DNA from: Blastocladiella emersonii ATCC 22665
Taxonomy: Eukaryota > Fungi > Blastocladiomycota
Length of the DNA: 64,000 bases
Assembly: GCA_025594325.1 (NCBI GenBank)
Contig: JANHCV010000009.1
Span: 434,001 to 498,000 of the forward strand
Reading direction: 5' to 3'
Shown: one piece after another, positions 23,870-64,000 of the stretch
Layout: the number at the start of each line of letters is the position of its first letter
How positions within the stretch are numbered: position 1 is the first letter of the stretch
The notes under the pieces: generated by a model
Told to the model about the DNA's origin: nothing
Seen by the model: the letters and a program-made list of their open reading frames with translations, nothing else
The model's database searches: none
Position numbers and translations under genes: made by a program

Positions 23870-24187
23870 TTATGGGCAGGGACGAGTGCGGTCCGCGGAC
23901 ACTCGAAGCGTGCAACGGCGTCGGCATCGGCGGGGTGGCTGATCTCGCGGGTCGACCCGGGCACGTGACGGATGCGAGACAATGCGCCACATCGAGGCGC
24001 GGCGCGTCGACGTGTCGGACGTGGGCCGGTGAAAATAGGGGTGCTGGTGAAGGTCGTACGGGATCGAGACGCGAGAAGTGTGAATGCAACCTAGACCGAC
24101 CGCGGTACACTCGGGTGGCAGCTTGCCGAGTTCAAACTGAGGATCGCGTTGCATCAAGTTCCATTCGGTCATTTTATCGGATTGCAT
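23870..24187 (-). pseudogene. 5' relic of the F-box-like family
   Basis: MQSDKMTEWNLMQRDPQFELGKLPPECTAV matches the family N-terminus (MQTNEMTECNLMQSDPRPGLGNLPLELATV), then homology is lost. The upstream palindrome is retained at 24276-24293. Confidence 0.75.
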
Positions 24188-24275
24188 GATGTCGTTGATC
24201 CGGGAGGGAGCGCTGCGCGTTGCGCAGCGATGAAACACACGAAGTGTCTGCGCTCAACGACGCCAAGGTCACGCC

Positions 24276-24293
24276 GGTTACGCGAAGGTAACC
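24276..24293. promoter_or_regulatory. Palindrome GGTTAC-N6-GTAACC upstream of the family relic
   Basis: Read directly. It lies 89 nt upstream of ATG 24187. Equivalent sites occur at 26995 and 56544. Confidence 0.55.
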
Positions 24294-24522
24294 AACGCGA
24301 TCTCCATGAGCAGCACCGCAAACACGACGTACCGACGGAATCAAACGTCAGGATTCAACAAGGCCAGATAGACGCGTAGGCCATCAAGGAGTAAAGGTTG
24401 AGGCTTACGGCGCGCAAATTTAGTTAAAGTTCGAGATCGTTTCGTCAACTAAGTTCAACATCAAATGAAAGATACATTTACTCCGTGACATTTACCTGAA
24501 CAGAGCGACCAACGGATCTCAA

Positions 24523-26893
24523 TCATAAGACTTCTTGGACGGCCGCGAGCAGCGCGTCCTTGAACTCGATTGAGGCTACGGTTTGAGGGGCCACGCGCGT
24601 GAGCTGTTCGAACGTCAGCTTGGCATAAGAGCTGTTATGCACCGAGACGACTGTAGCTTGCGCGATCCGCTGTGCACTCACAATCCCGTCAAGTGCGCCG
24701 TCTGGAATCTCGCGCAGCAGCGAGTGCGTGAACGGTACAAGTTTGTAGCCCGGGCCGTGTTCAAGGTCGAGCCACTTCAAGACGCCCGAAAGATCAGCGC
24801 GAAGAAGCGTACGGAGAGTCTCGCGGAACGGCGCCACGACTGTGCGGCATTGAGCGACACAGGGCAGGAGAACCACTTCGGGCTCGCCCGTGTCAGGCTG
24901 AGTGCTGTGAGCAACATAATCGATGAGAGCAATGTCCGGATTGGACCAAATTAACCCTGCAACCGCAGAAGCTGAACTCTTGGAGAGCTGGCGCACGAAG
25001 CCGGGGGGCGCGATGTCGATCACATGGACCATGGTATTGAACCACGCGCGCTGGCGCGAAAGCGGGCAGTCACCGCATGTTTTGAGGAACGGCGAACACG
25101 GAAACGTATGGCTCTCCACAAGCAGCGTGAGTTGGGCGTAGATCATCGCGTCGAGGTACAGGGACGCGGTGCCCCGTTCCCGAATGAGTTGTGACGCATA
25201 CTCGCGATGCGCGGGATCGTGGTCGATGGCGACAAGAACCCACACAAGTTTGGCACAGAACTTGACGTCGTACTGCCGCACAAATGCATCGGCAAGCTGG
25301 AACAGGATGCGCAAGTCGACGTGAAGCTGGCTCGAAAAAGTGACCTTCAGGGCCGCGTCCAGTGCAGGAGCCGTGCCACTAGCCCCGCGCACGGCGGACG
25401 GAAGCGCTTCGATGAAAGCAGCGAAGTTGTCACCAAAGTGCACATGAGCAAATCCAAGAAGTTGCTGGGCGCTGTGAGCCGTGTGAACGTGCGTGACAAA
25501 TGCTACCAATATTTCTTTGGTCAGTCAAGGGAATCAATAGGTGTAAGAAGAGTGACGTACCAGCCGTCAGCATTTCGGACAGCGCGTCGCCAGCGTACTC
25601 AACAAGTGCGATCGCGCTTGGGCTCGATAGACCGCTGTCAGCATCGCGCAAAGTCTGCAAAACGAGGTGTCCCCAGCCGCGCACGTCAAGCTGCCTGCAC
25701 CAGATGAGCGTGGTGATCAAGTCGCCAGAGCAGAAGCCGCCGGCTTCGAAATGGTCTGCAAGATCTTCCTTGGTCGCATTTCCAACAAGTCGGAGGCCGA
25801 TCTTGGAGTTGAGCTCTATGAGTCGCCGAAAGACAGATGGCCACTCTACGAAACGGGCGATTAGATCCCGGGTGTCGTCGGTCAGAATAATGCCTTGACG
25901 CGGCCAGCACTCGAGAAACAGCCAGTTGAACATGTCGATAATACAATCTTCACTCATTCCATGCAAAAGCCTCGGGAGGTCCGCGAGGAAGTTTGCCATG
26001 TTTACTTGCTTAACAAAGTACGTGGTAAGCCACTGCTCGTTGAAGCTGAGCCGCGGGTGACGCAGGGCCTGCATGGTCGGGTAGCTCCACGTAAAAATCG
26101 AAATCAGGCCAATCATGTCGAGGAGCTTGACAGGAATCAGGTCCTGACCCTCGTCCGCCTCGTCGTCATCATCGTCTGCGGCGACCCGCCAGGAGAACTT
26201 GTTCCAGAGAAAGTAGAGCCGCGCTTGGCGTGAAAAGGCACACCAGCTATTACCAGGAAGTTCAAAGAGGAAGAGCTCGGGGACCCGCTCCTTGGCGCTC
26301 AGAAGCGGCGGAAGCAGGTGCCGGGGCTCGAGCGCAAATGCGGCAGTAATAAGAATTTGAAGCGCGGTGGCGATAGGGATGTGGGTAGCGTTCACGACTT
26401 TGCCAACCGGGCGGTCCTTGATGAGTTGATTTGCTTCGTCGGCGAGGTCAGCAAGCTGGTTGCAAGCTGGGTCGAAGCCAGCGATATTGGCGGCCGCTCG
26501 AACAAGAAAGTAGTCCAAGATCACGGGGTACAGGGACACGACAGAGCGAGCATCCGCGCTCGGGTGGGCGGCCGAAATGCGTGACTTGAACAGCGAAAAG
26601 TTGCGTTGACGCTCGAGCAGATAAGTCGCGTAAGTGACGAACAGCTCGTCCCTGAACCGAAGCCGGTTATCCTCCGCGTTGTATGTCTGATTGACGAGGA
26701 GAGAGTGGACCCACTTGTGCTTGACCTGCGTGGTACAAGCCATGTGGTGAAGCTGGCGGGAAGCTGTGGCAACAGCGCGCTTTGGGCCCGACAGCTGGAG
26801 CACGACAGTCGCAAGTTCAAGCGGCAGGTTGCCGAGCCCGGGCCGCGGATCGGATTGCATCAAGTTACATTCAGTCATTTCATTGGTTTGCAT
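24523..26893 (-). CDS. F-box-like accessory family member, apparently intact (774 aa, phase-1 intron 25515-25560)
   Basis: GLGNLPLELATVVLQL N-terminal motif. The 46-nt gtacgt..ctgac..aag intron joins the two ORFs in frame. C-terminal KTCGDC and LLREIPDGALDGIV motifs. Confidence 0.85.
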
Positions 26894-26994
26894 GAAGTTA
26901 GGAGGGGAGGGAGAGAGCTCGGAACCGCGGATCGGGCGGATGCTCGAAACGAAACGACGGAGTCGCAAACGACGCCAAGAGCGCCACTCACGCC

Positions 26995-27012
26995 GGTCAC
27001 GCGGTGGTGACC
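26995..27012. promoter_or_regulatory. Palindrome GGTCAC-N6-GTGACC upstream of family gene
   Basis: Read directly. It lies 102 nt upstream of ATG 26893. Confidence 0.55.
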
Positions 27013-27114
27013 AACACGTTCCCGCATCGGGGAAGCCAAGGTAAACGCTTCGTGAGTCTGAAGAAATGAGCAAAAGAACAACCTTAATCGTATAATTTTA
27101 AAGACAAACAAGAC

Positions 27115-30100
27115 TCAAGCCGTGGGAAGAAGCGGGAAGAGGAGCGCGCGCTTGAGCTCCGATTTGAGCATATTGAACACGGCGACCGTGCCCGGCTCGG
27201 TCCGCGGGAACTGGGCCACGTCAGGGATCGAGTGATCCATCATGGCCGCGTGGCCAAAATCAAAGTACTCGTCAATTGCGCTCGTGTGATCGCCAAGCCA
27301 GTCGATGACAGGAAATTTGGTCCGCTTGTGCGAGAAATGGGCAGCTTCCGCGCCATCGACCAGCCGGCGAAGCTTCTTGACGTGTGCCCGCGTAGCAGCC
27401 GAGGCGGTCGACTTTGCTGGAAGCATTGGCACACGCAAGAAGCTGACATCGAAGACGACGGTTGGACCAAACGCCTTGCCCTGTGGCGCGAGGACCACTG
27501 GTCGATTGACGAAAAGGATCGCGGTGATGCCGTCGTACTCGCAGTCCACGATCTTGGCCACAAAAGCACACGAATGGCGACCGATCAGGTTTGGAATGTC
27601 AATGAACAGGGCCTTGAGTCCAAGGGCGCTGCACGCGCCTTGGTTGCGCTGGTTGGGCTCAGGTTCAGGGTAGTTAATCCGGCCGCCTGGCCTCAGGCAT
27701 TCGGACTTGGAGTACATGTTGACGATCCGGTGCAGCCCAGCTCGGTAAGAGAGTCGCGAGATGGCCCGCCCGCCGTCTACGGGCTCGTACGGCGGGAGTG
27801 CGATTCGAGGAATAAGCGGGACAAGGCCAATCACAGGAAGCACCGCTTGTGGGACAAAGTACACCGAGACTTGGATGACGCGCGTGGTACGATCGACCGC
27901 AACAGTGGTTGCTTGAGCAGAGGAGGGAAGTCGGAATTGCTGCAGCTTCCCATCGACGTACAGCGCAACAGCGCCTTTGTAAAGCGTGAGATCACAAGCT
28001 GGAGCAATCTTCAAGCGAACCTTGTCGCGACCGGCGGGCAAATCCAGGAAGAGGCGCGCAAGGTTGGGTCCGAGTACCGCGAGATGAGAGACTGGCAAGT
28101 TCCAAGCAGGCGGACGCGAAGCGCCGGCTGCACGGGCAGCGGCTGCCGACTCCATGATTCCGCGGACAGCAGCCTGCATAGCCAAAAGCGGGATCCGTGT
28201 CGTTTTGATCATTTCACAACCGAGTTCGTTACTGATCGTCATTAGGCCTGTGCCAAGAGCGGCGTCTGGCCGCGTGAGAGCTCGGTAAGCAGCAAGGCAG
28301 CATTGAGCGCTAGAATTGTCCAAGTGGTGAGCTGCCATGTACCAAGTCGCGTGGACCGTTCCGCGCGACGCGTCGTGGACCACGCGAAGCGATTTGAACG
28401 CTGTCTGTCGCTCGGTTTCCTTCCAGCCGACGTAGATGCACGCAGCGGGAGAACGCAGCGGAAACGGAGACGCAAGCGTGAACGTGGCCTCGGCGCGGTA
28501 AGCAAAATCGAGGTCATTTCCAGGGACGCCATCCCCCTGAAAGCCGTGGCCAAGCGCATGGAGAGAATTCTCGGAATAAGGGCGATGAAAGATTCCATAG
28601 TGGGTCAAGGTAAGTGCGCCAAGATCAGCGTTCCCGCTCCCTTCAGCTGGCGCGCTCAGGTGCGGCCAAGGAAGCGTGGTGTACGGCGCTGCACCACACC
28701 AGGTCAGGCGACCGCCAGCAAACGCGTAAGCAAGGAGCTTGATGGGAAGCATGCCCGTCCGAAACGATCCACCTAAACACGTCAAAAACACCGTCAGTAT
28801 GCATGCTCGACGGGCCAGGAGTATGTAAACAAGACTTGCCAAGAGTACACGCATCCGGATGGCCGAGCTTTAGGCTGGAGGAAACGAGCCCCGTAATCTC
28901 TCGCGACACGTGAGGCGAATCACCAAGGGAGACGGGGACCATGGGCTGGCCAAGCTTTCGGAACGTGTACTGTCGATAGGGCATGATTTGCGACTCGGTG
29001 CACGCGGCGGGAGCGAACGGCTGCGCGCGCGAGTGCCAGCTGTCAAAATCGGCCTCGCCAGCCTCGCACAAGGCGACCCCAAAAAGCACGGAAAGCACTG
29101 AGATGGTCAGCCCAAGGGAGTGCTCGAGCGCCTTGATCGCGCCTTCGCTGCGGCTGGAGTGCTGGTTGGAGCAGACTCGCAAGAGCGAGTGGTCGCCCGC
29201 CTTCGCGTCGTTGTACTTGAGAACAGCCGACGCAAGCAGGAGCAAGTGGACGAGCCCGCACCGATCAGCGAGAGTCGAAGTGTCGACCACGTCAAAACGA
29301 AGCGCAGGATCCGCGGCCAGCTCCTCGAGCAAGAGAATTGCGTCGCCGAGGACAAAGACAAGCTGATTCGCTGGCGCGGTAGGCGAAACGAACGGAGCTG
29401 GAGCAAGGACACGGCGAAGGGCACTTGTCCACTTGGTGAGCTGATCCATCAATCCGTCCTCGATGCTTTGAGAGCTCACATCCATGCTAATGCCGGAAAG
29501 CTGCGAGCCCAGGGTGGAGCTGCTGTAGAAGGTCGGGTTGACAAAGACACGCGGGCACGTGCCCGACTCGGACCGTTTTCGCAACAGGATGCTGCCGCCG
29601 GACTCGCCGAGAAAGTACGCGTTGTCGTCAACAAGCCGCTCGTGCTCGCAAGCGAGTCGCCCCTTGACAGAGAATCCAAGGAAATCGGTTAGGTCGAGGG
29701 AGAGCGCCGTACGGGAACGGAGAACGAGCGCATCGCGCGCAACCTTCGTTCGCTCAGTCTGCTCCGATGGCAAGGATAGATCGTGATCCCTTTGAAGCCG
29801 GTGGAGGGCCGACGTATCCGCCGCGAGAAGTTGAGCGCGCGCGGCGACCTGGTCAGCCGAGTCCGGAAGTGAACTGGACCGCTCGCGCCAAGCGTGCCAG
29901 CAAGCGCGGACGGCGTCGAGCGTCGGCTGGTTCATGACACGCACCTGCAAGTCTGTCGCGAGCCAGTCAAAGTCAATGCACAAGCGCATCTGCTCGATCC
30001 AGAAGTTGAACGCGTCCGCCTCGAGGTGCTCCGAAAACCAGAGCTGGCCAATGAAGCGGTCGAGATCGTCGTGGTCAAGGAACGAGTGCATAAGGGCATG

Positions 30101-30394
30101 GAGAATCAAGAGCGAGCGAGCGATGGGGTCAGGGCGCAGGTCGTTGAGCGTGAAGGACATGGTTGCGCGCGACTGCTTGCGCTCGGCCTCGCCCAGCGTG
30201 TGCGCGATCGAGCGCAGGTCATTGAAACCGCATAAAAGCGCACGAAGTTCGCGATCGGCGATTTGGGCGTCGTGGTACATGAACACGTCGGTGGCATACG
30301 AGTCGCGGAACGGATCAAAGTGGTCTGCTGGGTTTGTGTACAAAACCGGCGCGCTCGTCTGTGTCGGTACAAAAATAAGGTCGGCCGATTCCAT
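27115..30394 (-). CDS. DUF4470-like protein, copy 1 (intron about 28773-28848)
   Basis: LLCGFNDLRSIAHTL, FTLNDLRPDPIARSLLIL and RFDVVDTSTLADRCG resemble the DUF4470 motifs (GxGDxRn, DxxxxxARN, FDxIDTSNLAD). Splicing restores alignment to the 34070-37399 paralog. Confidence 0.8.
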
Positions 30395-31041
30395 TGCAGC
30401 AAGTTACTTCATTAGATTAGCATTGCTAGATGAGTGAGAGTTGTCAAGGGGGAGCGCGAGTCGCTGGCGACAGAGGCTTGAAACGCCACCGCCATCACAA
30501 CCAGTGTTGAATATCACAACACGTGTTTTCGCGACGCGTCTCGCGTCGGACGTCGGCATCATGAGTTTGTCCGTTGATCGAATTGACCGCGTTTTTTCGA
30601 AGGGCTCGCTGCCCAGCAGGGCCAACAGCATGTCGGCCGACAGCGCTGCTTCACTTGCGACCACCCCCCGCCACAACCAACCACTTGGCGAGAAGAGCCT
30701 TGTCGCGCCTGGCAGCGTGCGTTGCCAAGTCGCTCACCGTTGTAGGTCTTAAACATGGGCATGACGGGCGCGGGCCATCACGGAGCACGCGCCGCAGTTT
30801 GACACGTTCAGCATGCGTTGCGACGCACGTCGCTCGCGCAAGCGGGCCTCGATGCGATCCTCAAGCACCGATCCGCCAGCCTCAAACAGGTTATGCTTGA
30901 GGAGGTCAAAAAAGCTGGGATGGGCAGCAAGCTCGACGTTGCCGGCTCTCCGGCTCTGTGGATAACCCGTCAATCAGCTGATCAAAACTCGGCGGTGCCC
31001 CCTGCCCTCGCTTTTCCGCGCATCTGCACAAACCCTTCACC

Positions 31042-32214
31042 ATGGATCTAATGGAAAGGACACTCCCTGCATTGCCGGTTGAGATACTGGATCTTATCTT
31101 GCGCGAAGCCGTTTTGACGCACGGCCCAAACGAGCTCGACAGGCTTGCCGAGTATGGTCACGTCATGCCGCAGGCGTATGCACCGCGCGCCCGCGACACT
31201 ATTCAGCAACGGCTTCTCTAGCGCATGGCCATGGACAAAGCCACACACAAGGGTCGCATCGATGTGCTCGAGGCCTGGCGCCGCTCGGGGTTCCCGCTTG
31301 GTCACACTGAAAGAGCTTTCTATATTGTCAACTCTTACGAGTTACTCGACTGGTGGTATCGATCTGGACTCGCTATGCCAGAGGTCAAAGAGCCATACCA
31401 AGCCCACATTGCTGTTCACCTTATGGGAGAAACTCGCGCGGACGTGAAGATGTGGGTACGTCGCGGGTGCTCAAACTCGACCTCTCCCGGCTTTCGCTCT
31501 CGTCGGACGACATGGCCAATCTCGCATCCCTACTTGCCTTCTGGACTAACTCACCTCAATTTCTCGGTCACCGACTTCAAAGCCCTTGGCGCGGAATATC
31601 TCGCGCGTCACCTTCCGCCTGGACTGATCTCGCTTGACGTGTCCAGCAACTGGCTTGGCGATGCGGGCGCAGCCGTACTCATCAGCCACATGCCACCGGG
31701 ACTGCACGAGCTCTCACTACACGAGTGTCGCAATGGCTCAACTGGAATTGTGAACCTCGCCCCACGCCTTCCCGCGAGCCTAGTTGCCCTGACGATATCA
31801 GGGAACGGAATTGATGCGTTTGCAGCAAGGGTTCTCGCGCAGCATCTCCCTCAAGCTCTTGGACGGCTTGACATTTCGAACCATCCGCTTGGGCTTTGTG
31901 CACAAGGTGCCGAGCAAATCGTACATGCTCTGCCGTCGACGCTGCGCTTTCTCTGGCTAAACAACACAGGCGCGACCGACGCGGTTGTGTGCACGCGCAT
32001 GTCGCGCGCGCTATGGAGATTCGTGGACCTGGACATTAGCGGGACGTGTTCGACCCATGTCGCACTCGAGGCCATTCTCAACCACAATTTGCCAAGCTTA
32101 CAGTGGCTCGGACTTGCCAACATCACCGATCCAGACACGGGGGACGAGGTTGACATGACATCGTTCCTCGCACGAGTCCCAGTTGGACTTCCCGTGGACC
32201 TGGACGCCGCATGA
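31042..32214 (+). pseudogene. F-box-like / ankyrin-like 'VLDWW' / RNI-type LRR gene, disrupted
   Basis: ATG 31042 gives MDLMERTLPALPVEILDLIL, then an in-frame TAG at 31219-31221. It continues AMDKATHKGRIDVLEAW..LLDWWYRSGL, followed by about 7 LRRs (e.g. LISLDVSSNWLGDAGA). A second frame around 31.47-31.53 kb encodes an LRR-like VLKLDLSRLSLSSDDMANLASLL. Confidence 0.8.
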
Positions 32215-32388
32215 ATGTATCGGTGTTATGATCTGTCTCGGCGCAGATGGGCAGTCTCGGGCGAACGACGCGTCGTTCATAACACGTGATGTGAACAACC
32301 CGAAGCTCAGAGGACAGGTATTGCGCAGCTTCATCGCACCCGTCCAGAAATTCATTCAAAATCTGCATTCAAATGATTACACCTATTG

Positions 32389-33819
32389 CTAATACATTGA
32401 CATGAGTGGATTCGCAGGCCCTGGCGACGCCCGCGCTGTACTCGCAGCAAGAATCGCGGCCGCCGCGCTGTACGCTTCGGGGCACTCGAAATCGAGGACG
32501 ATCCAGGTCCCCGTCGCACGCGCGTTGACGACAATTGATAGTTCTTCGCCAGGTGGGGCAGCGTACGCGATGAACGCGGTCGCCGGCCCGCATAACGAGC
32601 GCGACATCCGGCTGCTCCGTTCGCGCAGGACCACCGCAGTCGTATCGCCGTGTCCAACGCACCACAGATCCATTTCTGTGGCTCGTGTCGAGCGCCACGA
32701 CTGCATGAGCCGATCAGCGAGACTGCGCGCGGGCGCCCATGCCGGAAAAGCACGATGCGCGCGGACGCGGAAGTGCAGAACGGTCAACCCACACGCGAGA
32801 CTCGGGTCGCTGAACACGTCAAGCGCCTGTGACGGCCAAAAAAACGAGGGCGGTAGCGGTGAATGTACGGTGCTCGTCTCGCTGGGTGGAAGTACGAGAA
32901 GTGGGACCGTCGCGGCGAACGGCGGAGTGAAAGCGGGCAAGGCCTTGTCGTTGGAGCGAGTCGCTGCGTCCACGAGATCCAGCGGCGGAGAAGCATCGGA
33001 AGCGCTGCTGGCGACCGCGGACGGCTTGGCCGCCACGACGGCCGAGTCGAGTGTGAGATTCAGGTCATCGGATTCGTCAGCATCAGCGAAACCACCGCGG
33101 ATTTGCAGGCTACCGGCGCCATCGCCCGCGGTCCCGCGCTGCTGCTCGAGCTGACGTCGCACCTTGGCCGCGTTGAGCGCGGCGAGCAGCATCGGGCCCG
33201 TGTAGCTTGCGACCGAGAACGCGCCCGCGAACGCGACAAGCACGGTGATCAGCTCGTACTGGACACGGGCGCTCGGCGGCGTCGAGAGTAGAACATTGAC
33301 GATGATGATGATCACGGCCGCGTTGACGAGGCAGATGCCCCAGCGCACCGCCTCCTTGAGGTTAAACCGACATCCACGCGCGCGCCACGCCCACCACAGC
33401 GCGAGCGCGTAGAATGCCGAATGCGTCGACGTGATCCACAGCGCCGCGTTGCCAAGGATGTCGGGCGCCGCGCACCGGCAGCGGTACTCGATGGTCGTGA
33501 TGGTGGTCAGCACGTTGACCGACGGCGAGCACGACACGGCGAGGTAGATGGTGGGACCGAGATACATGAAGACCATGACGAGGCCCGACTGCGCGAAAAG
33601 TCGAGCGAAATGCGAGCTAGACCCGTTGAGCGCGCCGAGCGCGAGTCGAAGGCGGAGCTGGGCGGCCGCGTTGAGCCGCGGTTTGCCCGACGCGGACGAA
33701 CCAGACCGCCCAAAAGTCCCGATCGTCCGCCGCCGTGAAGCAAGCTTGCCGCCACCGCTGCTACGAACGCTCCCCATCCTGGCCGTCCGAAGGACGGGAG
33801 CGTGGCCACCGGGCTTCAT
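32389..33819 (-). CDS. N-terminally truncated class C (7tm_3-like) GPCR: about TM4-TM7 plus cytoplasmic tail; possibly a pseudogene
   Basis: Four TM segments. ALWWAWRARGCRFNLKEAVRWGICLVNAAVIIII resembles the class-C TM5-loop-TM6 pattern (W.tR.....N-e/d.+.+g..+yN). No signal peptide, ligand-binding domain or TM1-3. Confidence 0.62.
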   Translation of the reverse strand: MKPGGHAPVLRTARMGSVRSSGGGKLASRRRTIGTFGRSGSSASGKPRLNAAAQLRLRLALGALNGSSSHFARLFAQSGLVMVFMYLGPTIYLAVSCSPSVNVLTTITTIEYRCRCAAPDILGNAALWITSTHSAFYALALWWAWRARGCRFNLKEAVRWGICLVNAAVIIIIVNVLLSTPPSARVQYELITVLVAFAGAFSVASYTGPMLLAALNAAKVRRQLEQQRGTAGDGAGSLQIRGGFADADESDDLNLTLDSAVVAAKPSAVASSASDASPPLDLVDAATRSNDKALPAFTPPFAATVPLLVLPPSETSTVHSPLPPSFFWPSQALDVFSDPSLACGLTVLHFRVRAHRAFPAWAPARSLADRLMQSWRSTRATEMDLWCVGHGDTTAVVLRERSSRMSRSLCGPATAFIAYAAPPGEELSIVVNARATGTWIVLDFECPEAYSAAAAILAASTARASPGPANPLMSMY

Positions 33820-34069
33820 AACACTAGAAGCCGTCTTCGACCAGTTACTCCATCAGTTTTGCATGATAGCCAACGAGCAAAGGAGGAGGAGCGGCTCGGG
33901 GCTCGTGGGAAACGGAGGCACAGAGAGCGCCGCGTTGACCGCGTGTCTCATCGCGTGAGCGGCGCCTCCTGCAACGGACTGGCCGGCGGGCTGAGGCGCT
34001 GACTCCCTCCTCCCACACGGCCCCATCAGCTCTCGAACCCATGCTAAACTGATGAAGTAACTGACCGCA

Positions 34070-45620: not shown

Positions 45621-45658
45621 TGCTCATATACATCCAGCAGCGGGCTGTGTGAGAACAC

Positions 45659-45746
45659 ACATCAGCTTGAGCTGATGGGTGCACATCAGCTCACAAGCTG
45701 ATGGGTGAACATTGGCTCACGAGCTGATGGGTGCACATCAGCTCAC
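45659..45746 (+). repeat. Left cluster of 24-bp quasi-palindromes GAGCTGATGGGTGCACATCAGCTC
   Basis: About 3 copies. Reverse complement of the right-hand array units. Confidence 0.9.
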
Positions 45747-50336: not shown

Positions 50337-50474
50337 ATAGATCTAGTTGTCAATAAACAGTTTGAGCTTATTGAGCCCCGCTTTACCTTATTCCTTTGTC
50401 CCATCGTTATTAATCCCAAGATCTTTCCTAGCCTGCAATAACAATGGTTGATCTCCTCAAACACAGGTTCCCGC

Positions 50475-50704
50475 ACTGATACCCAGTACCTTGGCTTCTC
50501 AGGAAGCCAGTACCTTGTACCTACCCTCCCGCCAAAACCTCAATACCTTGTACCTTCCTGTGTAAAATGCTGGACAATACCTACCCCAAAATCGCAGTAC
50601 CTGATACCTTTGGGGAGGGTCCCTGAAAAAAATTTTCTGTACCTTGTACCTCCAAAACTGAGCTGAAAAGGTATATACCTACCAGATACCTACGGGTAGG
50701 TACT
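50475..50704 (+). repeat. Right subterminal TACCT repeats of the hAT-like element
   Basis: agtaccttgtacct, aataccttgtacct, agtacctgatacct and similar motifs. Confidence 0.85.
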
Positions 50705-50721
50705 GAGTCCGTGCAACCCTA

Positions 50722-52330: not shown

Positions 52331-52504
52331 CAACGACGCTCTCACTTTCCCCTGTACCACCATCTCGTACGTGATCAACCGCCGCTGAGGCTTTCATGAC
52401 GGAAAAGTCACACCGGCCTTCTTTTTGGCCGCTTCATCGCCAAGCTCTTCGACCCGTGCGGCTGCAACCGTGAGCCAGAAATGCTTCTAGCTCGCGCAGG
52501 CGCC

Positions 52505-52684
52505 GGCTTGCGCGATCGAACCGAGCCGAAGGTTGGGTTGCATCAAGTTACTTCATGAGTTTGCGTTCTTTGACTCGGTTACGGGTTCCAAGCTTGCTGG
52601 TCGAGCGAGACGGGTGATCGAAAGCTTCTGTAGGAGAGGGGCTGAAACCGCTGGCGCCACTCACGCCGGTCACGCGGAATGACC
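52505..52684 (-). pseudogene. Orphan promoter/5' relic of the F-box-like family
   Basis: Reverse strand reads gcaaactcatgaagtaacttgATGCAACCCAACCTTCGGCTCGG (NLMQPNLRLG) and then stops. A 24-nt stretch gcgccactcacgccggtcacgcgg at 52654-52677 is identical to 26981-27004. Confidence 0.75.
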
Positions 52685-53179
52685 AGTACGTCTTGGCCCT
52701 ACGCAGCAGACGAAGCAGCACTCAATTTTTTTGAAGCTCAGTACTGATTGCGCTCACTGCCTGCGCACACAAGAAGCCGTCGACGGTGACTTGCGTGCGA
52801 TGCCGCCGTCAACCGATTCCGCTTGAGTGCGGCGTGGGGTCGGCACTGATGCTTCACCTCGAGTACGCATAATTAGTGCAACAGTGGGTTATTCGTGAAA
52901 TCAAAAGATTCTTTCAGTCAGTCTGCCCTCCTTGGGGTGCCGAGTCTTGGCGCAGGTCTTGGCGTGCACCGAAACCGGGTGCAGTCGGCTGGTGAGCCGG
53001 AAATTAGGCGGGAGACGTCACCGGACTGGGGAACCGACGCGTCAGGAGCGTCCGCGTGCAAGCCGGCCGGTCCGTGGGTTGCCCTTCAAATTTCGTCGCG
53101 CCCGCTCACTCTCGCTCCCGCACTGCAACTTTGCAACACGTCGGATTTTGGCGGCCACAGTACTGGCAACGCATTCACC

Positions 53180-53936
53180 ATGACCTTCCTCGCGGCCATC
53201 GCATCCAGCATGGACGGCTGGGGCCTGCACTCGGCCGCGTCGCTCGCGCTCACGATTGGCGTCCCGGTGCTCTCTGGTACGCGCCGTTTCCTTGGGCTTT
53301 CGTTTCGAGCTAGCATGCTGACAACCGCACCACGGTGTAGGCCTTGCCACCAGCATGACGATTGGTAACTCGCTTGAGACCTGGTACCGGGAGATTAAGG
53401 TTTGTGACATGCGTTCCTCGACCCTCGACCCCCACTGACCATCACCTTTGCCCCCTCCCACAGAAGGCCCCGTGGAACCTCTCGGGCGACATCTTCGGCC
53501 CCATCTGGGCGCTACTCTACACATCGATGGGCTACGCGTCGCATCGCATCTTCCACCTCGCCCCGCCGCACCTCCGCGCTGCGCCGCTTGCCCTGTACGG
53601 CGTCCAGCTCGCCATCAACCTCACGGTACGGTTTTTCACGGTTCCTCCGCAATGAACCTCTCACTCACCTGCTGCCTCGCCCCAAAAATGCAGTGGTCGC
53701 CCGCCTTCTTCGCCGCCAAGCGGTTCGGACTCGGCACGGCCGTCATCTCGGCGCTTTGGGGCGGCATCGTCGCCACGACCTACTCGTTCTTCCAGTTCGA
53801 CGCCACGGCCGGCTACCTCATGCTCCCGTACCTCGCGTGGGTTTCGTACGAGTCGACGCTCACGTGGTACATCTGGCGCAACAACCCGGGCTTCCGCCAC
53901 AAGTACGCCGCGGGCAAGCGCGTCAAGAAGGAGTAG
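53180..53936 (+). CDS. TSPO: TspO/MBR (translocator protein) family, 3 introns
   Basis: Spliced ..TWYREIK|KAPWNLSGDIFGPIWALLYTSMGYASHRI..LYGVQLAINLT|WSPAFF..AGYLMLPYLAWVSYESTLTWYIWRNN. Confidence 0.9.
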
Positions 53937-54113
53937 AGAACGGGCGTGAATTGTGGGATGATTGATGCGGTTCGGACATCGGCGTATACATGCCTTTCTC
54001 GTAGCTTGCTCGCGCGCATGCGTGTCCCTGATCGATTGAGTTTCTGAAACTAGTTATCGCGCAAATCACGGACAGTATATTCACATCATAAACACGTAGC
54101 GAAGCACAGGACA

Positions 54114-56468
54114 CTATGGCTCCTTCACTGAAGCGGCGGACATGCAAGCTGAGTGCACAGCAGCGCAGAGCGCGTCATTGTACTCGGCGGATGCCACCGT
54201 CTGCGGCGCCGTGCGCTTGACTTGCTCAAACGTGAGCTGCTTGCGCGTCGACTCGCGAGTCGAGTCAAACACGGCCCGTGCAAGGAGACGCGGGTCAACG
54301 ATCCCGTCCAGCGCACCGTCTGGGATCTCGCGGAGCAGCGAGTCCAAGAAGGGTGTCTTGCCGCCAAGGTCGAGCCACTCCACAAAGCCCTTGAGATCAG
54401 CGCGAATGAGAATGCGGAACGTCTCGCGGTACGAGGCCGGAACTGGCCGACACAGCGCGAGGCACAAATGCTGGACCGTCGAGTCAAGGGGCAGGGGGCA
54501 AGTCTGGGCGAAGGCAGCGAGTGGGGTCACATAGTTCGGAAGATCGAGGTTGTTCTTCCACACAAGAAGGTTGCGAAACGGGCGTGTCGCGGTCTGAGAA
54601 AGTTGGCGAACAATACCGCGCGGCTCATGATTTATGAGCTTAGCCATGGCATCGAAATACACGCGTTGAGTCGAAAGGGTACACCTGCCGCAGATCTTGA
54701 TGAACGGCGTACGTGGAATGACGTGCTCGCCTGAGACTCAGAAGAACTGGGCGCAGATCATGACGTCAAGGAGCAAGGCCGCGGTGCCCTGTTCACGAAT
54801 GAGCTGCACAACGGCATCGTGTTGGGCATTATCGTGAAGAGCGGCGACAATGACCCACGCGAGTGGTGCGAAGGCCCACGGATTGTAGCGCAAGACGAAT
54901 GCGCTGGCGAGAAGAAACAGTGTGTAGAGCTCGGCACCAGCGTTGCTCGGGAAAATGATCGGTATAAGCGCATGTAAGTTGTTGGTATCACACGAAGCCT
55001 GGCCGACGGCAGTAGCGATAGAATCGACGCATTTGCGGAATGCACCGTCATCGAGGTGGGCGCGAGCGAACATGAGAAGCCGTTGGGGGCAACCTTCAGA
55101 CCGCATGTGTGTGATAAAATCTAGTGTAAAGCGTGGATTTGGTGAGCATACATTTTTCATCGTGTGTCTCGATCTGCGGCGCACCTGAAGTAACCCTATT
55201 CTGAAGCGAATCACCCGGGTTAGCATCAAGAGCCGACGCAGCGGGGCCCGTGGGCCCGTCTCCATCGTCCCGAAGGGCCCAAGCGGCGAGGCGAGACCAA
55301 GTATCGGCATTGAGCAGCTGGCATTCGGCAAGCGCAATAACAGCTTCGTTCGAGTACTTGACCTGATCCTTTGAAAGTCATTCTGCGATGTGGACCTTGC
55401 TCGCGTTGGTGATTCCGGCAAGCAGCCGGTTCGGGTCGAGCTTGGCAAGGTGAGGAAGCACCTCCGGACGACAAGCAAAGAACGCGATGAGATTCGTGTC
55501 TTCAAAAACCAGGCGTCGATCGTTCGGCCAGCATTCGCGAATCAACCAAGCGACCACAGCTGCAACTTGCTCCGCTGGCTTACCCACCCAATGCCGGTCA
55601 CGCAGCAAATAGCTAACGGGACAGATTGAAGTTGAAAAGGTCGAGATGAGTCGTTGCTCGTTGAAGCCGAGCCGCGCGCCGCGCAGTGCCTGCAGAATTG
55701 TGAAGTCCCAGGTCAACACTGCCAGCAAGGCGACGAATTCGACCAGACTGAGGTGCTCGAGTGGCGCTGGGTCCAATTCCGATTCGACTATCATATTTGT
55801 GTGGCAGAAAATGAGCGAGCCCGAATGAGAGAGATAACTCCAAGTTATGCCGGGCATCTTGATTTGGAAAAGGGCGGGTGCACGTTTGTAGGCGGACACG
55901 AGCAGCGGGATGAGCGCATGCGGGGCAAGATTACTCGCGCCAGCAGCCAAGACCTGCAGGACCAAGATAACAGGACAATCGGTGAGATCCAGCACATCAC
56001 CGTCTTCCCGCTCGTGCACGAGGTCGCGGATCAGTTGGGCAAAGGAATCGAGGTCCAGGAGATCATCTTGCATCACTGATCCCATAAAGTGGTCCAGGAG
56101 CACAGGGTAAAGCGAAGCCACGCGGCGAGCCTCCAAGAGAGCGTGATCGGCGGAGGCGCGGTCAAAATTGGAGGATCGAGGACGGTTCCGCTCAAGCAAA
56201 CAGGTCGCATCCGTCGTGACATGCTCGCCGTTTAAGCGGACCGACTCTTCGGCGGCATGGCCATGGTCATCGAGAAGATACTTGATCCACGCGTGCCGCA
56301 CGGGAAGAGTCCGAGCGACGTCGCAGAGCTGGCGAGATGCCGCCGCCGTGATCCCCCGGGGAGCGGACAGCTGCAGCCGACCGTCGCGATTTCGACGGGC
56401 AGGTGGTCGAGGCCAAGCCGTTGATTAGATTGCAAAAAGTTGCCGTTATTCATTTCATTTGTTTGCAT
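54114..56468 (-). pseudogene. F-box-like family member, pseudogene
   Basis: Start MQTNEMNNGNFLQSNQRLGLDHLPVEIAT. Frameshift at about 56377. In-frame TGA at 55378-55380 (VHIAE*LSKDQVKYSNE) and at 54738-54740 (ICAQFF*VSGEH). Conserved intron at about 55126-55190. Confidence 0.85.
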
Positions 56469-56543
56469 CGTTTCGACTGCCGTGGGAGCGGGAGAGTTTG
56501 CGCGGGGGGGGGGGGGAAAGCGAATATTTCCGCCACCCCATGC

Positions 56544-56561
56544 GGTCACGTGCGGGTGACC
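56544..56561. promoter_or_regulatory. Palindrome GGTCAC-N6-GTGACC upstream of family gene
   Basis: Read directly. It lies 76 nt upstream of ATG 56468. Confidence 0.55.
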
Positions 56562-56693
56562 TCCGCGTCGCCCACGATCGTTCCCGTTAGGCTTTCCCGA
56601 GCGCCAATCGCAAGGCGCCAGTGAATGGAATTACATCAAACATGCTATATGGATCATTATCACGTCAACGGGGACAACAAATGTTTCCTTTGA

Positions 56694-59022
56694 TCAAGCC
56701 GAGTGGACGGCGGCGAACAGCGCGTCCTTGTACTCGGCCGAGGCCATGGTGCGCGGTGCCACGCGCATGAGCTGCTTGGACGTCAGCTTGGTGTCCTCCG
56801 GGTCGCGGACCAACGCGATTGCGGCCCGTGCAACCATCGGCGCGCCCACAATCCCGTCAAGCGCGCCGTCCGGGATCTCGCGCAGCAGCGAATCCGTCAA
56901 CGGCGTCGTGCCGCCGACCTCGAGCCAATAAAACACGCCTGCGAGGACGGCGCGAAGTAGCAAACGGATCATCTCGCGGAACGGATATTTGACTGGCTGG
57001 CACAGCACGAGTCGGGGACACTTTGCGTCGGGCAACTTCAAAAAGGCCGAGTTCTGCGCCAACAAAATGATTTCCACGAGCTGAGGAACGACAGCCTGCG
57101 ACAACTGGCGCGCAGTGAACCCGGGGTCGACGCGAGTCAGCCACACCATCCCCTCGAACCAAGCGCGTTGGATTGAGAGCGGGCAGCTGCCACATGTCTT
57201 GCGGCATGAAGTCAGCGCAAGCACATGCTTGCCAACGGCGTCCCCAAGCTGAGCGCAGATCATGATGTCAAGGAAAAACACGGCAGTCCCATGGTCACGA
57301 ACAAGCAGTTCAGCAGTCTCGCGCAAACCTTGATCGTGAACGACAGCAACAGGGATCCATGCGATCGGCGTGCACACAGAGGGATCAAACTGCTGCACAA
57401 AAGCGTTGGAAAGAATAAAGAGATCGCCCAGGTCACAATGCAAGTCGCTGGAGAAAATGGCGCGAAAAGCAGTGCGAAGTTCCTTGACGCCAAGCGAGCT
57501 CGCAGCGACAGCAGTCGCAACCGAGCTTGCGAAGCCCTGTAGGCCCTCGCTGTCCATGTGCACCCGGGCAAAGGCGAGAAGCCGTTGCGCGTCATGTTTG
57601 CCATACAAGAATGTAACAAACGCTACATTCGCGGTGCTCTCCGGGTGAGTTACGGGTATCTGGATCGCGCGCTAGGCTAGGAGTAGAGAACGTACCCGAG
57701 GTCAGCATTCTCTGGAAAGCGTCACCAGCGTAATTGACTAGGGCCACTGCGACTGAACCAGAAGAACCGCTGCCTGCATCACTCTGGGTCCATACCACAA
57801 GCTGATTCCAAATGCGCTCGTTGAGTAGCTTGCACTCGATGAGCGTGATGGCGAGCTCCTCGGACAAAATGCGAGCACGCGAGCGATGGTCGGCGAAAAG
57901 ACTGGCGATGCTGCTCATGAAAGCCTTGAGATTGCACTCTGGTCTGAGCTCCGCGAGCCGCCGAATGATCGCTGGGAAACTGAGAAGTCGGCTAACGACA
58001 TCTTTGTGGTCCAAGTCGCGGACCAGGCCTGGGCAGCACTTGAACGACCAATCAAGGAAGTCAACGACTTGCTCGACCGGCATGGCATTCCAAAAGTTCG
58101 TGCAGCACAGGAAAAAGACAGGCGGAGAAACATGGCTAGCGAACACGGCAAGAAGCGATCGGTCGTTGAAGTTGAGGCGCGGATGACGCAGGGCCTGCAG
58201 CGTTGGCAGGCTCGACGTGTAAATCGCGACGAGTCCGATAAAATCGAGCAGAGTCATCGTTACAAGCACTGGATCAGCCTCTTCGACTTCGTCCTCGTTA
58301 TCAAATGGACTGACGTAAGCCTTGACGGTCCACTCAAGATTGGTATGGTCGAACAAACTCGAGACGCGCTCGGAAAGTGAGCTCCAAGGAAAGACAGGAA
58401 TCTCGAGAAGGAAGAGTTCCGGGACCCGCTCCTTGGCGGTCAAGAGCAACGAGAGCAGGAGCTGTGGCTCGAGGCAGTACAACCCAGCAACGAGAACTTG
58501 GAGCGCTGCAGCAATCGGATACTCTGTGGTGGCAAGGAGAGGCATCCCTACGTAAGCATCAACCAACTCGCTGATTTCGGCGGCGACGTCTGGGAGCTGT
58601 GTGCACTCTGGGTCGGTCTTGCGCAGCTTGGCGGCAGCGAGCCCCAGTGTGTAGTCCAAGACGACGGGGAAGAGCGACGCGGCGCAGCGCGCGTCCGCGT
58701 TTGGATGATCCAAGGAGATCCGGTCGTATTGGAAAGACTTGTCACGATTCACCTCGAGCAGGCACGTCACGTCCATTCCGACAACGAGTTCGTTCAACTG
58801 GACCGATTCCTCGTTCTCGCGATGGACCCGGTTCACGAGAAGAGCGTGGACCCAAGTGCGCTTGACCTCGGTGGTGCGCGCAACATCGTATAAATGCTGG
58901 GACGCTGTCGCATTGATGCGCTGCGGGACGGAAAGCCGCAGTACATTGGAGAGGATTTCAACGGGCAGATTTCCGATCCCCTGGCCAGGATCAGTCGATT
59001 GCATAAGGTTCAAGTTTGTCAT
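56694..59022 (-). CDS. F-box-like family member, apparently intact (751 aa, phase-1 intron 57623-57695)
   Basis: GIGNLPVEILSNVLRL. The gtacgt..atgtag intron joins the ORFs in frame. ICAQLGDAVGKH..KTCGSC and LLREIPDGALDGIV motifs. Confidence 0.87.
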
Positions 59023-59242
59023 TTCATGGGATTACGTAGTACATTAACGTGCGGAGTGGAGCGAGTAACGAGTGAACAAAGTTTCGCGATCACGGCCAAA
59101 GCTGAGCGTCTCCCACCCTTCACTCCAGCATGAGCGACGCGTCTCCGCGATCGGTCCGCGACAACGCAAGGGTTACAGCGAGAAAGTTTGAAGGTACACG
59201 AAGAAATCAAATTATGTGATAATGCAAAGGAGACTCAAAAGT

Positions 59243-61791
59243 TCAAACTCGGTGGGACACTGCCGTGAAAGCCATGGCATACTCGGGTGAGGAAACCGTG
59301 CGCGGCGCCGTCCGCACCACCTGCGCGATCGTCAGTCGCGCGTCGGACGGATTGAGCATGGCCTTGAGCACAGCCTGAGCGAGCCGCTGCACATCGACAT
59401 TGCCATCAAGCGCGCCGTCCGGGAGCTCGCACAGCAGCGCGTCGGTGTAAAGGAGGGAGTTGCCGACGTCAAGCCACTGGAGCGCGCTTGCGAGGTCAGC
59501 GCGGAGTAGCAGGCGGACCAGCTCGCGGGTCGGATCCGCGACACGCCTGCAAAGGCCGAAGCAGGACCGCTTCGAGTTGCTGGCGGTCGCATGTGGGTCG
59601 CGACCGCGCTCATCAGTAAGCAAGACATGGTGCATCGAGTTTACGAGCTCCGCCAGCCGAGGAGCTGCGGACTGAGAGAGCCCACGGATTGCGGTGCGTG
59701 AATCAATCTCGATTAGCCACGCCGTCGCATCGTACCACGATTGTTGCTCGCACAGGCCGCACTTGCCGCAGGTTTTAATGAACTGCGTGCGCGAAATTGA
59801 GTGCTTGCCGACCGCGTCATTGAGTTGGGCGCAGATCATGACGTCGAGGAATAGCGGAGCGGTTCCCTGCTCTCGGATAAGCTGGGCAGCGGTGTCACGC
59901 TGCTCGTTGCAGTGGACGATAGCGACGGGAACCCACGCAAAAGCGGTGCAAACCGACGGATCGTAGCGCCGCACAAACGCCTCGGCGAGCAAGAAGACGA
60001 GGATGGGAGTGACGCACGCGTCGCTGGAGAAGATCGCTGAAAGCAGGGCCTTCATGGCGCCAGAAGTTTGCACGCGTTCACCCACCTCGGAAGCAATCAA
60101 GTCGACCAGAGTGCAAAGCTTGGTGCTGTCGAGGTGAGCGCGAGCGAACACGAGAAGCTGCTGCGCCGAGTGTTTAACCCGCATGTGTTTGATAAACGCT
60201 AGCCAAGGGAAGCGTAGCCGCGTTAACAAAACGCGCATCGCAAGTTTTCTCGCAACGAATGTACGAACCTGTAATAAGCCAGCGAGAAAGCTCTTCGCCT
60301 GGAAGCGCAGCGAGAGCGGAAGCGGCTTGGCCAGCGGGGCCGCCATTCTTGTCCTCAATGGCCCACAGCACAAGCTGAACCCAAGCGATTCTGTCAAGCA
60401 GCTGGCATTCGGCAAGCGTGACAACCGACTCGTTGGTGAGGGGGATCTTGTAGCGCGACAGGAGGAGAGAAACTTTGTCCTTGCTTGCTTTCGTGATGCC
60501 CGCGAGAATCCGGTCCCGATCGAGCTCAACAAGCCCACGCACAACCGCTGGCGAGCGTACAAAGTAAGCAACGAGGTTTTTGCCGCTAAAAATCAAGTCG
60601 CTGCGAGGCCAGCACTCGTGAATGAGCCAGTTGAGCGTTGCCACGGCGTGTGCGGCGGGAACCCCCTTTCGCCAATACCACGAGTGGTCGAGGTAAGTGG
60701 CAGGGCGCACACGCAAGTTGAAGAATTCGACAAAGCTCTTTTCGTTGAATCCTACGCGCATCGCGCACAGCCTGGAAAGTCGGGAAACTCCACGTCAAGA
60801 GGGCGATAAATGCAAGGAACTCGGGCAGCGTCATCGAAACGGCGGTCGGCGGGCCGTTGTCGTTCGGGAGCTCGTTGAGCGGGATCAGCACATCGACGCA
60901 GCGAAGGAGGATGGCCCACATGGAGAGCGAGCGCCAGAGGGAGATATCCATCTTGATACGGAAAAGTTCGGGGGCGTGTTCGCGTGCACGGACAAGCAGC
61001 GGCAGGAACAGCTGCGGGTCAAGGCGACACGCTGCGACGATGAGAATTTGGAAGACTGAGGCCACGGGAAACTCGGTGCTGGAGCGCACTTCCTCGATAC
61101 CCCGCTCGCGGAACAGATCGCGAACTTTGGCGGCGGTGACAAATGAAGCCGCCTCACCATTACGGAGCGCCTCGGCCGCGGGTGCAAGGAAGTGATCCAA
61201 GAGCGCAGGAACGAGCGCAGCGTATGCGCGGCCGTCCGGGGTCGGGTGGTCAGCCGAAAAACGGACATATTTGTACTCGCAGTAGCGGTGACGCTCCAAG
61301 GTATAGGTCACGTCCGTAACGCCAAGGCTTTCGCTATAGAAGCGGACCAAGTCTTCAAAGCCAGTTACCCTGCGGGCGAGGATTGAGTTGACCCTGTAGC
61401 GTGGCGAGGAGGGGGACACGAGGAGACCACGATACAGCTAGTCAGGGATGTGTATTCCTGCCTCCGGCCCCGAACCCAAGGCGGGGTGAGGGGAGAGTGG
61501 ATGCGAATGCAGGGAGCGCCGCCGCGGGCAGCAGGCGGCGCAGGAACAGGTGCGCGGTCGGTCACATGCGACCAGGTGGCTGGTTGCCACACGCGTCGGT
61601 TAACAGACCCATGAGCGCTTCGTAGGAGCAGAATGGACAATTTCGTAGATCTGGCGGGACGCCGTCGCGATTGGGAGCTGCGGCGTGACGAGCTGAAGCA
61701 CAAAATTCGCCAGCTCGACAGGCAATGAGCCCAGTAAAGTCTGCTGGTCGTGTTGCATCAAGTTGCAACTAGCCATTTCATTCGTTTGCAT
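59243..61791 (-). pseudogene. F-box-like family member disrupted by a solo LTR and a frameshift
   Basis: MQTNEMASCNLMQHDQQTLLGSLPVELA. Insertion at 61395-61605. Frameshift at about 60755 (DAR/RIQR vs LGFNEK). Conserved intron at about 60.20-60.27 kb. Exon 2 is open to 59243. Confidence 0.87.
61395..61605. mobile_element. 211-bp solo LTR
   Basis: TG..CA termini (tgtagc..gttaaca) flanked by the 5-bp TSD GACCC at 61390-61394 and 61606-61610. Excision restores KRSWVNSILARRV, matching KRTWVHALLVNRV in the paralog. Confidence 0.9.
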
Positions 61792-62099
61792 AGAGTACTT
61801 GCCGTCGACGGAGCGTGCGTTGTGAGGTCATGGAGCGGCGATGACGAGGCTTGGTCACACCAATCACGCGGTATGATCATAGCGGGCTTTTCTCCCACCG
61901 TCGTCAAGAGCCCGGGCGCACGCTCTACCCGCCGTAACGCGGGCTGGATACGCTGGATATCACTTCACCCATGAGCGTGGATTGAAACAGTCCATTGAAG
62001 TCGCCATCGATCGACTGGATCACATTGAACACGGTGATGGGGCTCAGGGAACACTATGAAATTCAAATAAATGGGACAATTACAGGAATATGAACCTTC

Positions 62100-64000
62100 T
62101 CAAAGCCGGTGAGCGAACGAAACAAACGCCAGCGAGTACTCGGGCGACGCGGTGGTGCGCGGGGCCACGCGCAGCGCTCCTGCAACAGTCAGCTGCGAGT
62201 TGGTCGGATCACGCACCGCCTTGAATACGGCCTGCGCAAGACGACGCGCGCTAATAACCCCGTCAAGCCCACCATCGGGGACCTCGTACAGGATCAAGTC
62301 GGTGATGGGCGCTGCGCCGCCAAGGTCAATCCATTTGGCGAAGCTCTTGAGGTCAGCGCGGACCAGTAGACTAACGAGCTCGCGAAGAGGGTCAGCGACA
62401 CGCGGGCACAGAGCGACGCACGAGCTCCTTGAAACGGCCGTCGTGGAAGCGGGGCGAGAAGATTGGTTCGTGCGCGAAGTAACCTCGCCCGTGGAATCCG
62501 GCATGGCGGGAGCTGGGCTTAGAAGCTCGGTCAGGCGAGGAACTGCAGCGTGTGACAGCTGGCGAACAGCCGCAATCGGGTCCACGTCAATAAGCCACGC
62601 GATTGCGTCGTGCCAAGCGCGTTGGAGGTGAAGGTCGCACTCGCCGCAGGTCTTGGTGAGCGGCGAACGCGAAAGGACGTGTTTACCAACTGTTTCATGA
62701 ACCTGGGCGCAGACCATCACGTCCAGGAAGAGTGAAACAACTCCCTGCTCGCGAATGAGCACTTCAGCGGACTCGCGCTGCTGGTTGTCAAGGAAGACGG
62801 CCACCGGAACCCAGGCGAGCGCTGAGCATAGCACGGGATCGTACCGCTGCACAAACGCGGCGGCAAGTAGAAAGGCGGCATGGGGATCGACAAGAAAATC
62901 GCTGTCAAAGAGCTTTGACACGAAAGCGCGCAGCTGATCAGGGGTCGGGCGGAGCTTACTGAGAGAGGACGCGGCCGAGTTGGCAAAGGTCGGAAAGGTG
63001 TCGCCCAGCTGCCCGTGTGCGTAAGCAATGAGGCGAATCAGATCGCCTTGGCTCGCGACAAACCTTTTCGACTGCAGATGATGGATGAATGCTAGACGCA
63101 GCGGGAACGGTAGGTTAGTAATGAGCGTGATGACGTGCCTCAAAGGATGACAAACCTGCAGTAAGCCTCGCCACTAACCCATTGCCAGAGTGCGATGCAA
63201 GCGCCAAAGCAGCTGGACCCGTCGGCCCACTGCCCTTGGTCCCAAGGGCCCAGGTGATCAGGCGGACCCACGCCTCGTCATTAAGCAGCTGATACTTGGC
63301 AAATGTAACCGCGAGGTCGTCCGAAAGCGGGACCCTGTTGTAGTTGTAGCCGTATCCGGCGTCGGGATCGTGAAGCGAATTAAAGACATGCTTTTTGGTC
63401 TCGCTTGTAATTGGGGCAAGAAGCTTGTCCGGGCCGAGCTCTGCAACTCGCTGAAGCACTGCGGGACGTGAGACAAAGAAGAAAATGGGATTCCGATCGT
63501 TGAAAACGAAGTCGGTCCTGGCCCAGCTCTTGTGTACAAGCCATTCAATCATTTGAACGACGCTGTCTTCCGGCAACTCCGTTCGGTAGTAATACAGTTC
63601 AAGATACGAAGCTGCCGAGAAGTGGATCCAAAAGTGGTCGCCGAGTCGTTCCTCGTCAAAACCGAGGTTCGAGTCACGGAGCGCGCAAAGCGTCGCCGCG
63701 CTCCACGTTAGGATCGCAAGGAGGCCAGCAAAATCGATGAGCTTGATCTTGGGTTCGGCACTGTTCGTGCTGCGCCGGGCGGCGCGTTTCGGAGGCGCTG
63801 GTACGTCACAAAAAATCCTGAATGCCTTCTCGGAGAGGCAAGACCAAAGCAAGGGTGTCATTTCAAGATGAAACAGTTTGGGAGCCCGTTCCTTGGCGCG
63901 TAAAAGCAGGGGAATCAGATGCTGAGGTGCGAGGCAGTATGCGCCCACAACAAGTACCTGGAGCACGGCAGTAATAGGAAACTCCGAGCCGGATGAGCAG
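62100..64000 (-). CDS. F-box-like family member; 5' end lies beyond the right window edge
   Basis: FPITAVLQVLVVGAYCL..LTWSAATL... Intron gtttgt..ctaac..ctag at about 63.10-63.16 kb. Exon 2 carries VCAQVHETVGKH..KTCGEC and YEVPDGGLDGVI. Confidence 0.85.

Follow-up and report, generated by a model that had tools for sequence, protein, structure and literature searches.

A stretch of 64,000 nucleotides (nt) from the genome of the zoosporic fungus Blastocladiella emersonii ATCC 22665, positions 434001–498000 of contig 21 (hereafter the window), harbours copies of an unnamed two-exon gene family that is expanded to at least 150 places in this genome and undergoes birth-and-death turnover. The proteins, exemplified here by the intact copy B, would be soluble, 750–800 amino acids (aa) long and built of three parts: a three-helix N-terminal head, probably an F-box that has diverged; a middle alpha-solenoid that evolves fast; and a helical C-terminal domain that is better conserved and bears CxxC and CxxxC motifs. 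The members are most likely substrate receptors of SCF (Skp1-Cullin-F-box) ubiquitin ligases, an assignment made from sequence and held with modest confidence. It is favoured because a conserved adaptor-like head, a variable solenoid and tandem birth and death together match the pattern of expanded F-box families.

The head as a probable divergent F-box

Across 30 paralogs L23, P24, E26 and W61 are invariant and L27, V31, L34, P37 and A44 occur in at least 90%, which bears out the shared N-terminal motif described in an earlier annotation made from the letters of the window only (the sequence-only reading). The AlphaFold2 (AF2) model of copy B places three helices at the extreme N-terminus, at residues 25–35, 39–52 and 55–68: a predicted module of approximately 45 residues that opens with L-P-x-E and has a hydrophobic core. 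When a profile of the 30 family heads was aligned by hhalign with a profile of 12 canonical F-boxes from the same genome, a probability of 87.9% was obtained (P 3.3e-6) over 39 columns, which correspond to residues 17–55 of copy B. The score of 33.5 compares with a mean of 9.0 for 200 column shuffles (SD 2.3, maximum 20.8) and with 8.9 for the reversed profile. Among 177,635 PDB sequences the best match to the head profile is the F-box of FBXW7 (E 0.18), and F-box-like, matched by 4 of the 30 heads (best E 0.031), is the only Pfam family to recur among them. With residues 12–80 as query, the ten best named clusters of the Atlas, searched by language model, are all F-box, with a top score of 0.91. 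A divergent F-box is the best reading of the head because these several lines, individually weak, agree; the profile-level homology to bona fide F-boxes lends it moderate support, short of proof.

A number of observations weigh against this interpretation. The sequence-only reading had proposed a comparison of the N-terminus with F-box profiles, and the outcome was negative: no copy attains the Pfam cut-off for F-box or F-box-like, the best score being 11.9 bits (E 0.2) versus a cut-off of 24.3, so that the F-box-like character of the N-terminus holds at profile level and not by Pfam standards. Whole pieces and 80-residue heads gave either nothing or E 0.2 against Pfam. Genome scans with PF12937 and PF00646 returned 47 and 27 places, respectively, none of which lies on contig 21 or among the copies compared. 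The helix-2 signature of F-boxes, V-x-K-x-W, is A-x-R-x-L here, the loop is two residues shorter, and the hhalign probability stays below 95%. Three-helix motifs starting with LP can also arise by convergence. Finally, the family genes (window positions 24001–28000 and 54001–64000) have a GC content of 0.56–0.60 and a GC content at third codon positions (GC3) of 0.67–0.70, compared with a GC3 of 0.86–0.95 in the likely housekeeping frames at 2001–24000; the low family GC3 suggests weak expression.

The body: a predicted solenoid and a cysteine-bearing tail

The products of the two exons were searched, aligned and folded separately, and statements on whole proteins rest on five intronless paralogs and the NCBI model KAI9173088.1. 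Both AF2 models are essentially all-helical. That of copy B exon 1 (444 aa, alignment of 26 sequences) has a predicted local distance difference test score (pLDDT) of 79.5 and a predicted template modelling score (pTM) of 0.80; that of exon 2 (325 aa, 38 sequences) reaches a pLDDT of 90.4 and a pTM of 0.89. The body is thus modelled with confidence as an alpha-solenoid, for which no specific relative in fold or sequence was found. Foldseek comparison of both models with the PDB returned nothing at E ≤ 0.001, with template modelling (TM) scores near 0.2; the C-terminal region, for which the sequence-only reading had suggested this search, has no specific fold relative by this measure. The best VIA-wide matches, assorted ankyrin, HEAT and ARM structures, have Z values of 6.8 and 6.5 for the two exon models, below the helical-protein background stated for the tool. 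Exon-1 and exon-2 profiles find no match among PDB sequences, Pfam assigns the body neither to a family nor to ARM/HEAT or other repeats, and the Atlas, queried with a whole paralog, offers large helical scaffolds only, at low recognition. The novelty claimed for the body is supported by these searches.

Conservation is unevenly distributed along the protein. Mean pairwise identity is 0.34–0.41 in the head, 0.13–0.28 in the middle and 0.31–0.39 in the tail; a conserved head followed by a variable middle fits an adaptor. Near-invariant elements of the tail are C142-x2-C145, C214-x3-C218, H131, R-V-A-P and P-D-G-A-L-D-G, the last of which substantiates the shared C-terminal block noticed earlier. 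In 38 paralogs H131 is kept in 30, C142 in 37, C145 in 38, C214 in 33 and C218 in 34. Together these His and Cys positions make a plausible candidate metal site, with C214 and C218 located in a lower-confidence loop of the AF2 exon-2 model. Copies C to F carry a further Cys at tail position 121, within the motif M-I-C-A-Q, where copy B has Tyr (window positions 25138–25140). Since this Cys is present in fewer than 15 of the 38 paralogs, it is a feature of the local subfamily.

Size, arrangement and turnover of the family

The assembly searched comprises 32.65 Mb in 21 contigs. The head profile scores at least 150 genomic matches: 150 of 503 first-look candidates were scored, and all 150 have E ≤ 1.6e-7. 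For the tail, the product of copy B exon 2 has at least 121 genomic matches, approximately 20 of which contain in-frame stops. These lower bounds go towards the genome-wide copy count that the sequence-only reading had called for. It was considered whether the head might be a module shared among different bodies. This is ruled out for the 14 additional head loci sampled, all of which also match the body profiles, and the copies accordingly constitute one family rather than a modular head.

The distribution of copies is markedly uneven. Contig 21, with 1.74 Mb or 5.3% of the assembly, holds 62 of the 121 exon-2 matches and may represent a fast-evolving compartment. The interval 425–514 kb of this contig, around the window, is especially dense in family copies. 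In a tree of exon-2 products, a 100/100 clade unites the copies of the window with two others, the next one along at 500 kb and one at 301 kb, and this clustering with near copies points to growth by tandem duplication. The same clade mixes intact and broken genes. Terminal branches are long (0.46–0.8) and other clades mix contigs. The family is therefore shaped by tandem birth with some dispersal, together with death by mutation in the form of frameshifts, stops and truncation, much as had been proposed from the letters of the window.

The ratio of nonsynonymous to synonymous substitutions (dN/dS) was taken from the closest genomic pairs, as pairs of window copies and more distant pairs are saturated. 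It amounts to 0.29–0.66 in the six closest pairs (dS up to 0.67) and to approximately 1.0–1.15 in two pairs at dS ∼0.69, both of which include the copy on locus L011; the range across all pairs with dS < 0.8 is 0.29–1.15. No evidence of positive selection is given by dN/dS in genomic pairs with dS < 0.8. The rapid divergence ascribed to the family can hence be upheld only as relaxed constraint.

Copies in the window

The copies in the window all lie on the minus strand; tblastn with copy B and family hidden Markov models (HMMs) detected one at every place where the sequence-only reading had put it (Table 1). That reading counted six gene-length copies, two of them intact, two pseudogenes and two cut by the window edges, in addition to two 5' relics. 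B to F are indeed gene-length and C to F lie head-to-tail, as described, with spacers of 220–310 bp; copy A, on the other hand, is only a divergent piece of exon 1 that has been truncated, and the 3.3 kb past the window edge show no detectable trace of the rest of exon 1 or of exon 2. C and E are pseudogenes, as stated. In copy C the frame shifts within the head, at about 56377, and is interrupted by stops at 55378–55380 and 54738–54740. Copy E is broken by stops at 61600–61602 and 61438–61440 and by a frameshift near 60756, and ∼200 nt are inserted behind its head. Copy F, however, is intact: its frame is continuous into the flanking DNA, exon 1 is without a stop and the ATG lies at window-equivalent position 64515, 515 nt past the edge. 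The number of intact genes consequently rises to three (B, D and F).

Each of the copies B to F is interrupted by a single GT..AG phase-1 intron of 58–73 nt, in agreement with the earlier description. Its site is shared to the codon, with a conserved L-T-x-G immediately preceding it and x-F-[VI]-x-H following, and paralogs modelled by NCBI also have an intron at the corresponding position. The two 5' relics differ in clarity. The one next to copy B retains DNA that matches the upstream region of B by blastn at 79% over 76 nt and at 82% over 34 nt; its reading frame decays past the LP motif. The one near 52540 is only faint: a 12-residue N-terminal echo accompanies a 39-nt element at 52654–52691 that is 87% identical to the upstream region of B (E 7e-7), and no family profile matches there at E ≤ 0.01.

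Table 1. Members of the family and their parts, in positions of the 64,000-nt window
Feature	Position	Strand	Basis and details
Copy A, truncated and divergent fragment, head and most of exon 1 only	27–1034	minus	Exon-1 profile positions 12–337, E 1e-45
5' relic just downstream of copy B, first 32 codons and upstream element	24092–24302 (codons 24092–24187)	minus	tblastn E 7e-5, 56% identity over 32 aa
Copy B, intact, 770 codons	24523–26893	minus	Two exons
Copy B exon 2, 325 full codons and stop, conserved C-terminal helical domain	24523–25502	minus	Open frame; exon-2 profile match
Copy B intron, 58 nt, phase 1, GTACGT...TAG	25503–25560	minus	
Copy B exon 1 (444 aa), head and variable helical body, ATG at 26893	25561–26893	minus	Open frame
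F-box-like head of copy B, residues 20–68, three predicted helices	26690–26836	minus	
Candidate metal site, conserved H131, C142, C145, C214 and C218 of copy B exon 2	24847–25110	minus	
Short conserved element ∼90–130 nt upstream of the ATG of copy B, common to both relics	26981–27019	minus	blastn matches 52654–52691 (87%) and 24269–24302 (82%)
Faint 5' relic, upstream element and ∼12 codons	52540–52691	minus	
Copy C, pseudogene	54114–56468	minus	Intron kept at 55121–55184
Copy D, intact, 751 codons	56694–59022	minus	Exon 1 57696–59022, intron 57623–57695, exon 2 56694–57622
Copy E, pseudogene	59243–61791	minus	Intron 60199–60268
Copy F, intact, 783 codons, crosses the window edge	62100–64000 and beyond	minus	Exon 2 62100–63091, intron 63092–63155, exon 1 from 63156

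Outside the family, ARAGORN identifies a tRNA-Val (GAC) of 97 nt at 21436–21532 on the minus strand, long enough for an intron.

Distribution and annotation

An exhaustive search of 1.84 billion representative proteins with the exon-2 profile, run without a word filter, returned 33 matches. Nineteen of the 20 looked up by name belong to B. emersonii, where they appear as NCBI hypothetical proteins (H9P43_...), and eight others map at 98–100% to loci of the B. emersonii genome; the remaining five, outside both of these traced sets, are short (57–131 aa). The sole confirmed outsider is a 754-aa saposin-repeat protein from a metagenome (JGI contig, 2,280 nt), with E 5e-9 and seven weak stretches over the CxxxC helix, and was set aside as probably compositional. 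Judged by these exon-2 matches, the family is confined to B. emersonii, and its description as expanded, unnamed and lineage-specific is upheld. A word-index protein search with the five intronless paralogs and copy B exon 1 gave no match; for this Ala/Leu-rich family it carries no weight, since it also missed annotated paralogs in the same collection.

Annotation captures only part of the family. The public protein library contains 32 representatives at 50% identity versus at least 150 genomic loci, which indicates that most copies are unannotated. Copies B and F are absent from it and D is present only as an 83-aa fragment holding its last 80 aa, whereas the 1,425-aa NCBI model KAI9173056.1 fuses two adjacent tandem copies at 646.6–650.5 kb of contig 21. 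The genome paper, which reports 21 contigs, an N50 of 2.02 Mb, 10,031 genes and a total of 34.27 Mb, as compared with 32.65 Mb in the assembly searched, mentions neither F-box proteins nor this two-exon family (PMC9730499). The family illustrates how much of the gene content of a published genome can be missing from its annotation.

Possible functions and alternatives

In the favoured scheme the head would dock on Skp1 of the SCF ligase, the variable solenoid would bind a target protein particular to each copy, and the bound target would then be ubiquitinated; tandem duplication enlarges the set, and frameshifts, stops and truncation remove members from it. Skp1 binding and ligase function, metal binding by the tail and any biological role of the family are inferred. 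The partner machinery is present in the genome, with Skp1 matches at three loci: contig 15 at 2012492–2012704, and contig 1 at 792512–792658 and 3199651–3199794. One of these Skp1-like loci is split by an intron and the two others have open frames of 237 and 227 aa. F-box expansions are often accompanied by extra Skp1 paralogs.

The main alternative would see the head as a family-specific helical cap that resembles an F-box without binding Skp1, the proteins then being solenoid scaffolds or binders outside the ubiquitin system with the Cys-bearing tail as their functional core. This seems doubtful. The sub-threshold Pfam scores of every head and the altered helix-2 signature would be expected under it, and the tail, as conserved as the head and endowed with near-invariant CxxC, CxxxC, PDGALDG and RVAP, is unusual for a purely substrate-binding end; yet F-box is the sole answer on which four independent sequence-based methods agree, the column shuffles stay far below the real score, and the head has the location and length expected of an F-box. 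It is less probable still that the copies are mostly decaying or selfish DNA, that is, open reading frames multiplied by segmental duplication or a mobile element and having little cellular function, an explanation to which we assign only a slim chance. The many broken copies (A, C, E, the relics and the stop-containing tail matches), the small number of annotated representatives relative to loci, the low GC3 and the concentration of half of the tail matches on one contig are in its favour. The genes nevertheless appear real, because frames of 750–800 codons remain open between copies that are only 40–45% identical, the intron boundary is preserved at one and the same codon, and the six closest pairs have dN/dS values below 1. 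The tight head-to-tail arrays also speak against it: terminal repeats and transposase are absent within the tandem units, and a transposon origin was rejected on this ground. Nor is there a dinucleotide signature of mutation resembling repeat-induced point mutation (RIP) when the TpA/ApT ratio of the family regions of the window is compared with that of positions 2001–24000.

The sequence-only reading had gone on to propose a role of the SCF adaptors in defence or host interaction. Nothing supports either, and a host role is unlikely because B. emersonii is a free-living saprotroph. A bolder conjecture, which we consider improbable, is that 150 to perhaps 500 receptors constitute a diversifying intracellular recognition repertoire, in which every receptor would capture a different foreign or selfish protein, derived from viruses, parasites or transposons, with its variable solenoid and deliver it to a ubiquitin ligase by way of the common head, as an immune-like SCF system that would have arisen separately from those of nematodes and plants; or else that head and Cys tail together form a new adaptor system no longer using Skp1.

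Returning to substrate receptors of the SCF ligase, if the heads do bind Skp1 the ubiquitin-ligase adaptors of this fungus would be several times the Pfam-based count, with ∼47 canonical PF12937 matches versus at least 150 hidden ones. Large F-box expansions would then not be a peculiarity of plants, nematodes and fungi with complex multicellularity. For structural study, moreover, the family offers an alpha-solenoid domain that is new, can be folded with confidence and contains a conserved Cys cluster.

Comparison with known systems

Canonical F-box proteins (PF00646, PF12937; for instance FBXW7, PDB 5ibk chain B) share with the family an N-terminal module of ∼45 residues starting with L-P-x-E-L/I, composed of three helices; helix 1 is succeeded by a conserved Pro, and a large protein-binding domain lies behind the module. 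The differences reside in helix 2, where canonical members have V-x-K/R-x-W and the family A-x-R-x-L, in the shorter loop, in scores below every Pfam cut-off, and in the body, which is neither WD40, LRR nor kelch: it is modelled as an alpha-solenoid that belongs to no known family and carries Cys motifs. Stacked helical hairpins are also found in ARM/HEAT alpha-solenoids such as beta-catenin, PP2A PR65 and the FANCE C-terminal domain, the only structural neighbours found. This likeness is generic only, given the lack of any Foldseek match at the threshold used, the low TM and Z values and the absence of ARM/HEAT matches in Pfam. Plant F-box/ARM proteins, for example ARABIDILLO, do exist.

The closest parallel is provided by lineage-specific F-box expansions. 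Nematodes and plants have F-box superfamilies of this kind. In mushroom-forming fungi, F-box copies number between 67 and 1,199 and are mostly recent tandem duplicates (bioRxiv 10.1101/349894), compared with approximately 20 F-box proteins in yeasts and 60–90 in filamentous fungi (10.1101/349894); the family described here would on its own exceed the totals of the last two groups. Like these expansions, it comprises hundreds of tandem duplicates with many pseudogenes, a conserved head and a variable, putatively target-binding part, and it is restricted to a narrow lineage. It departs from them in belonging to a zoosporic, early-diverging fungus, in being invisible to Pfam counts and mostly unannotated, and in having one novel body throughout.

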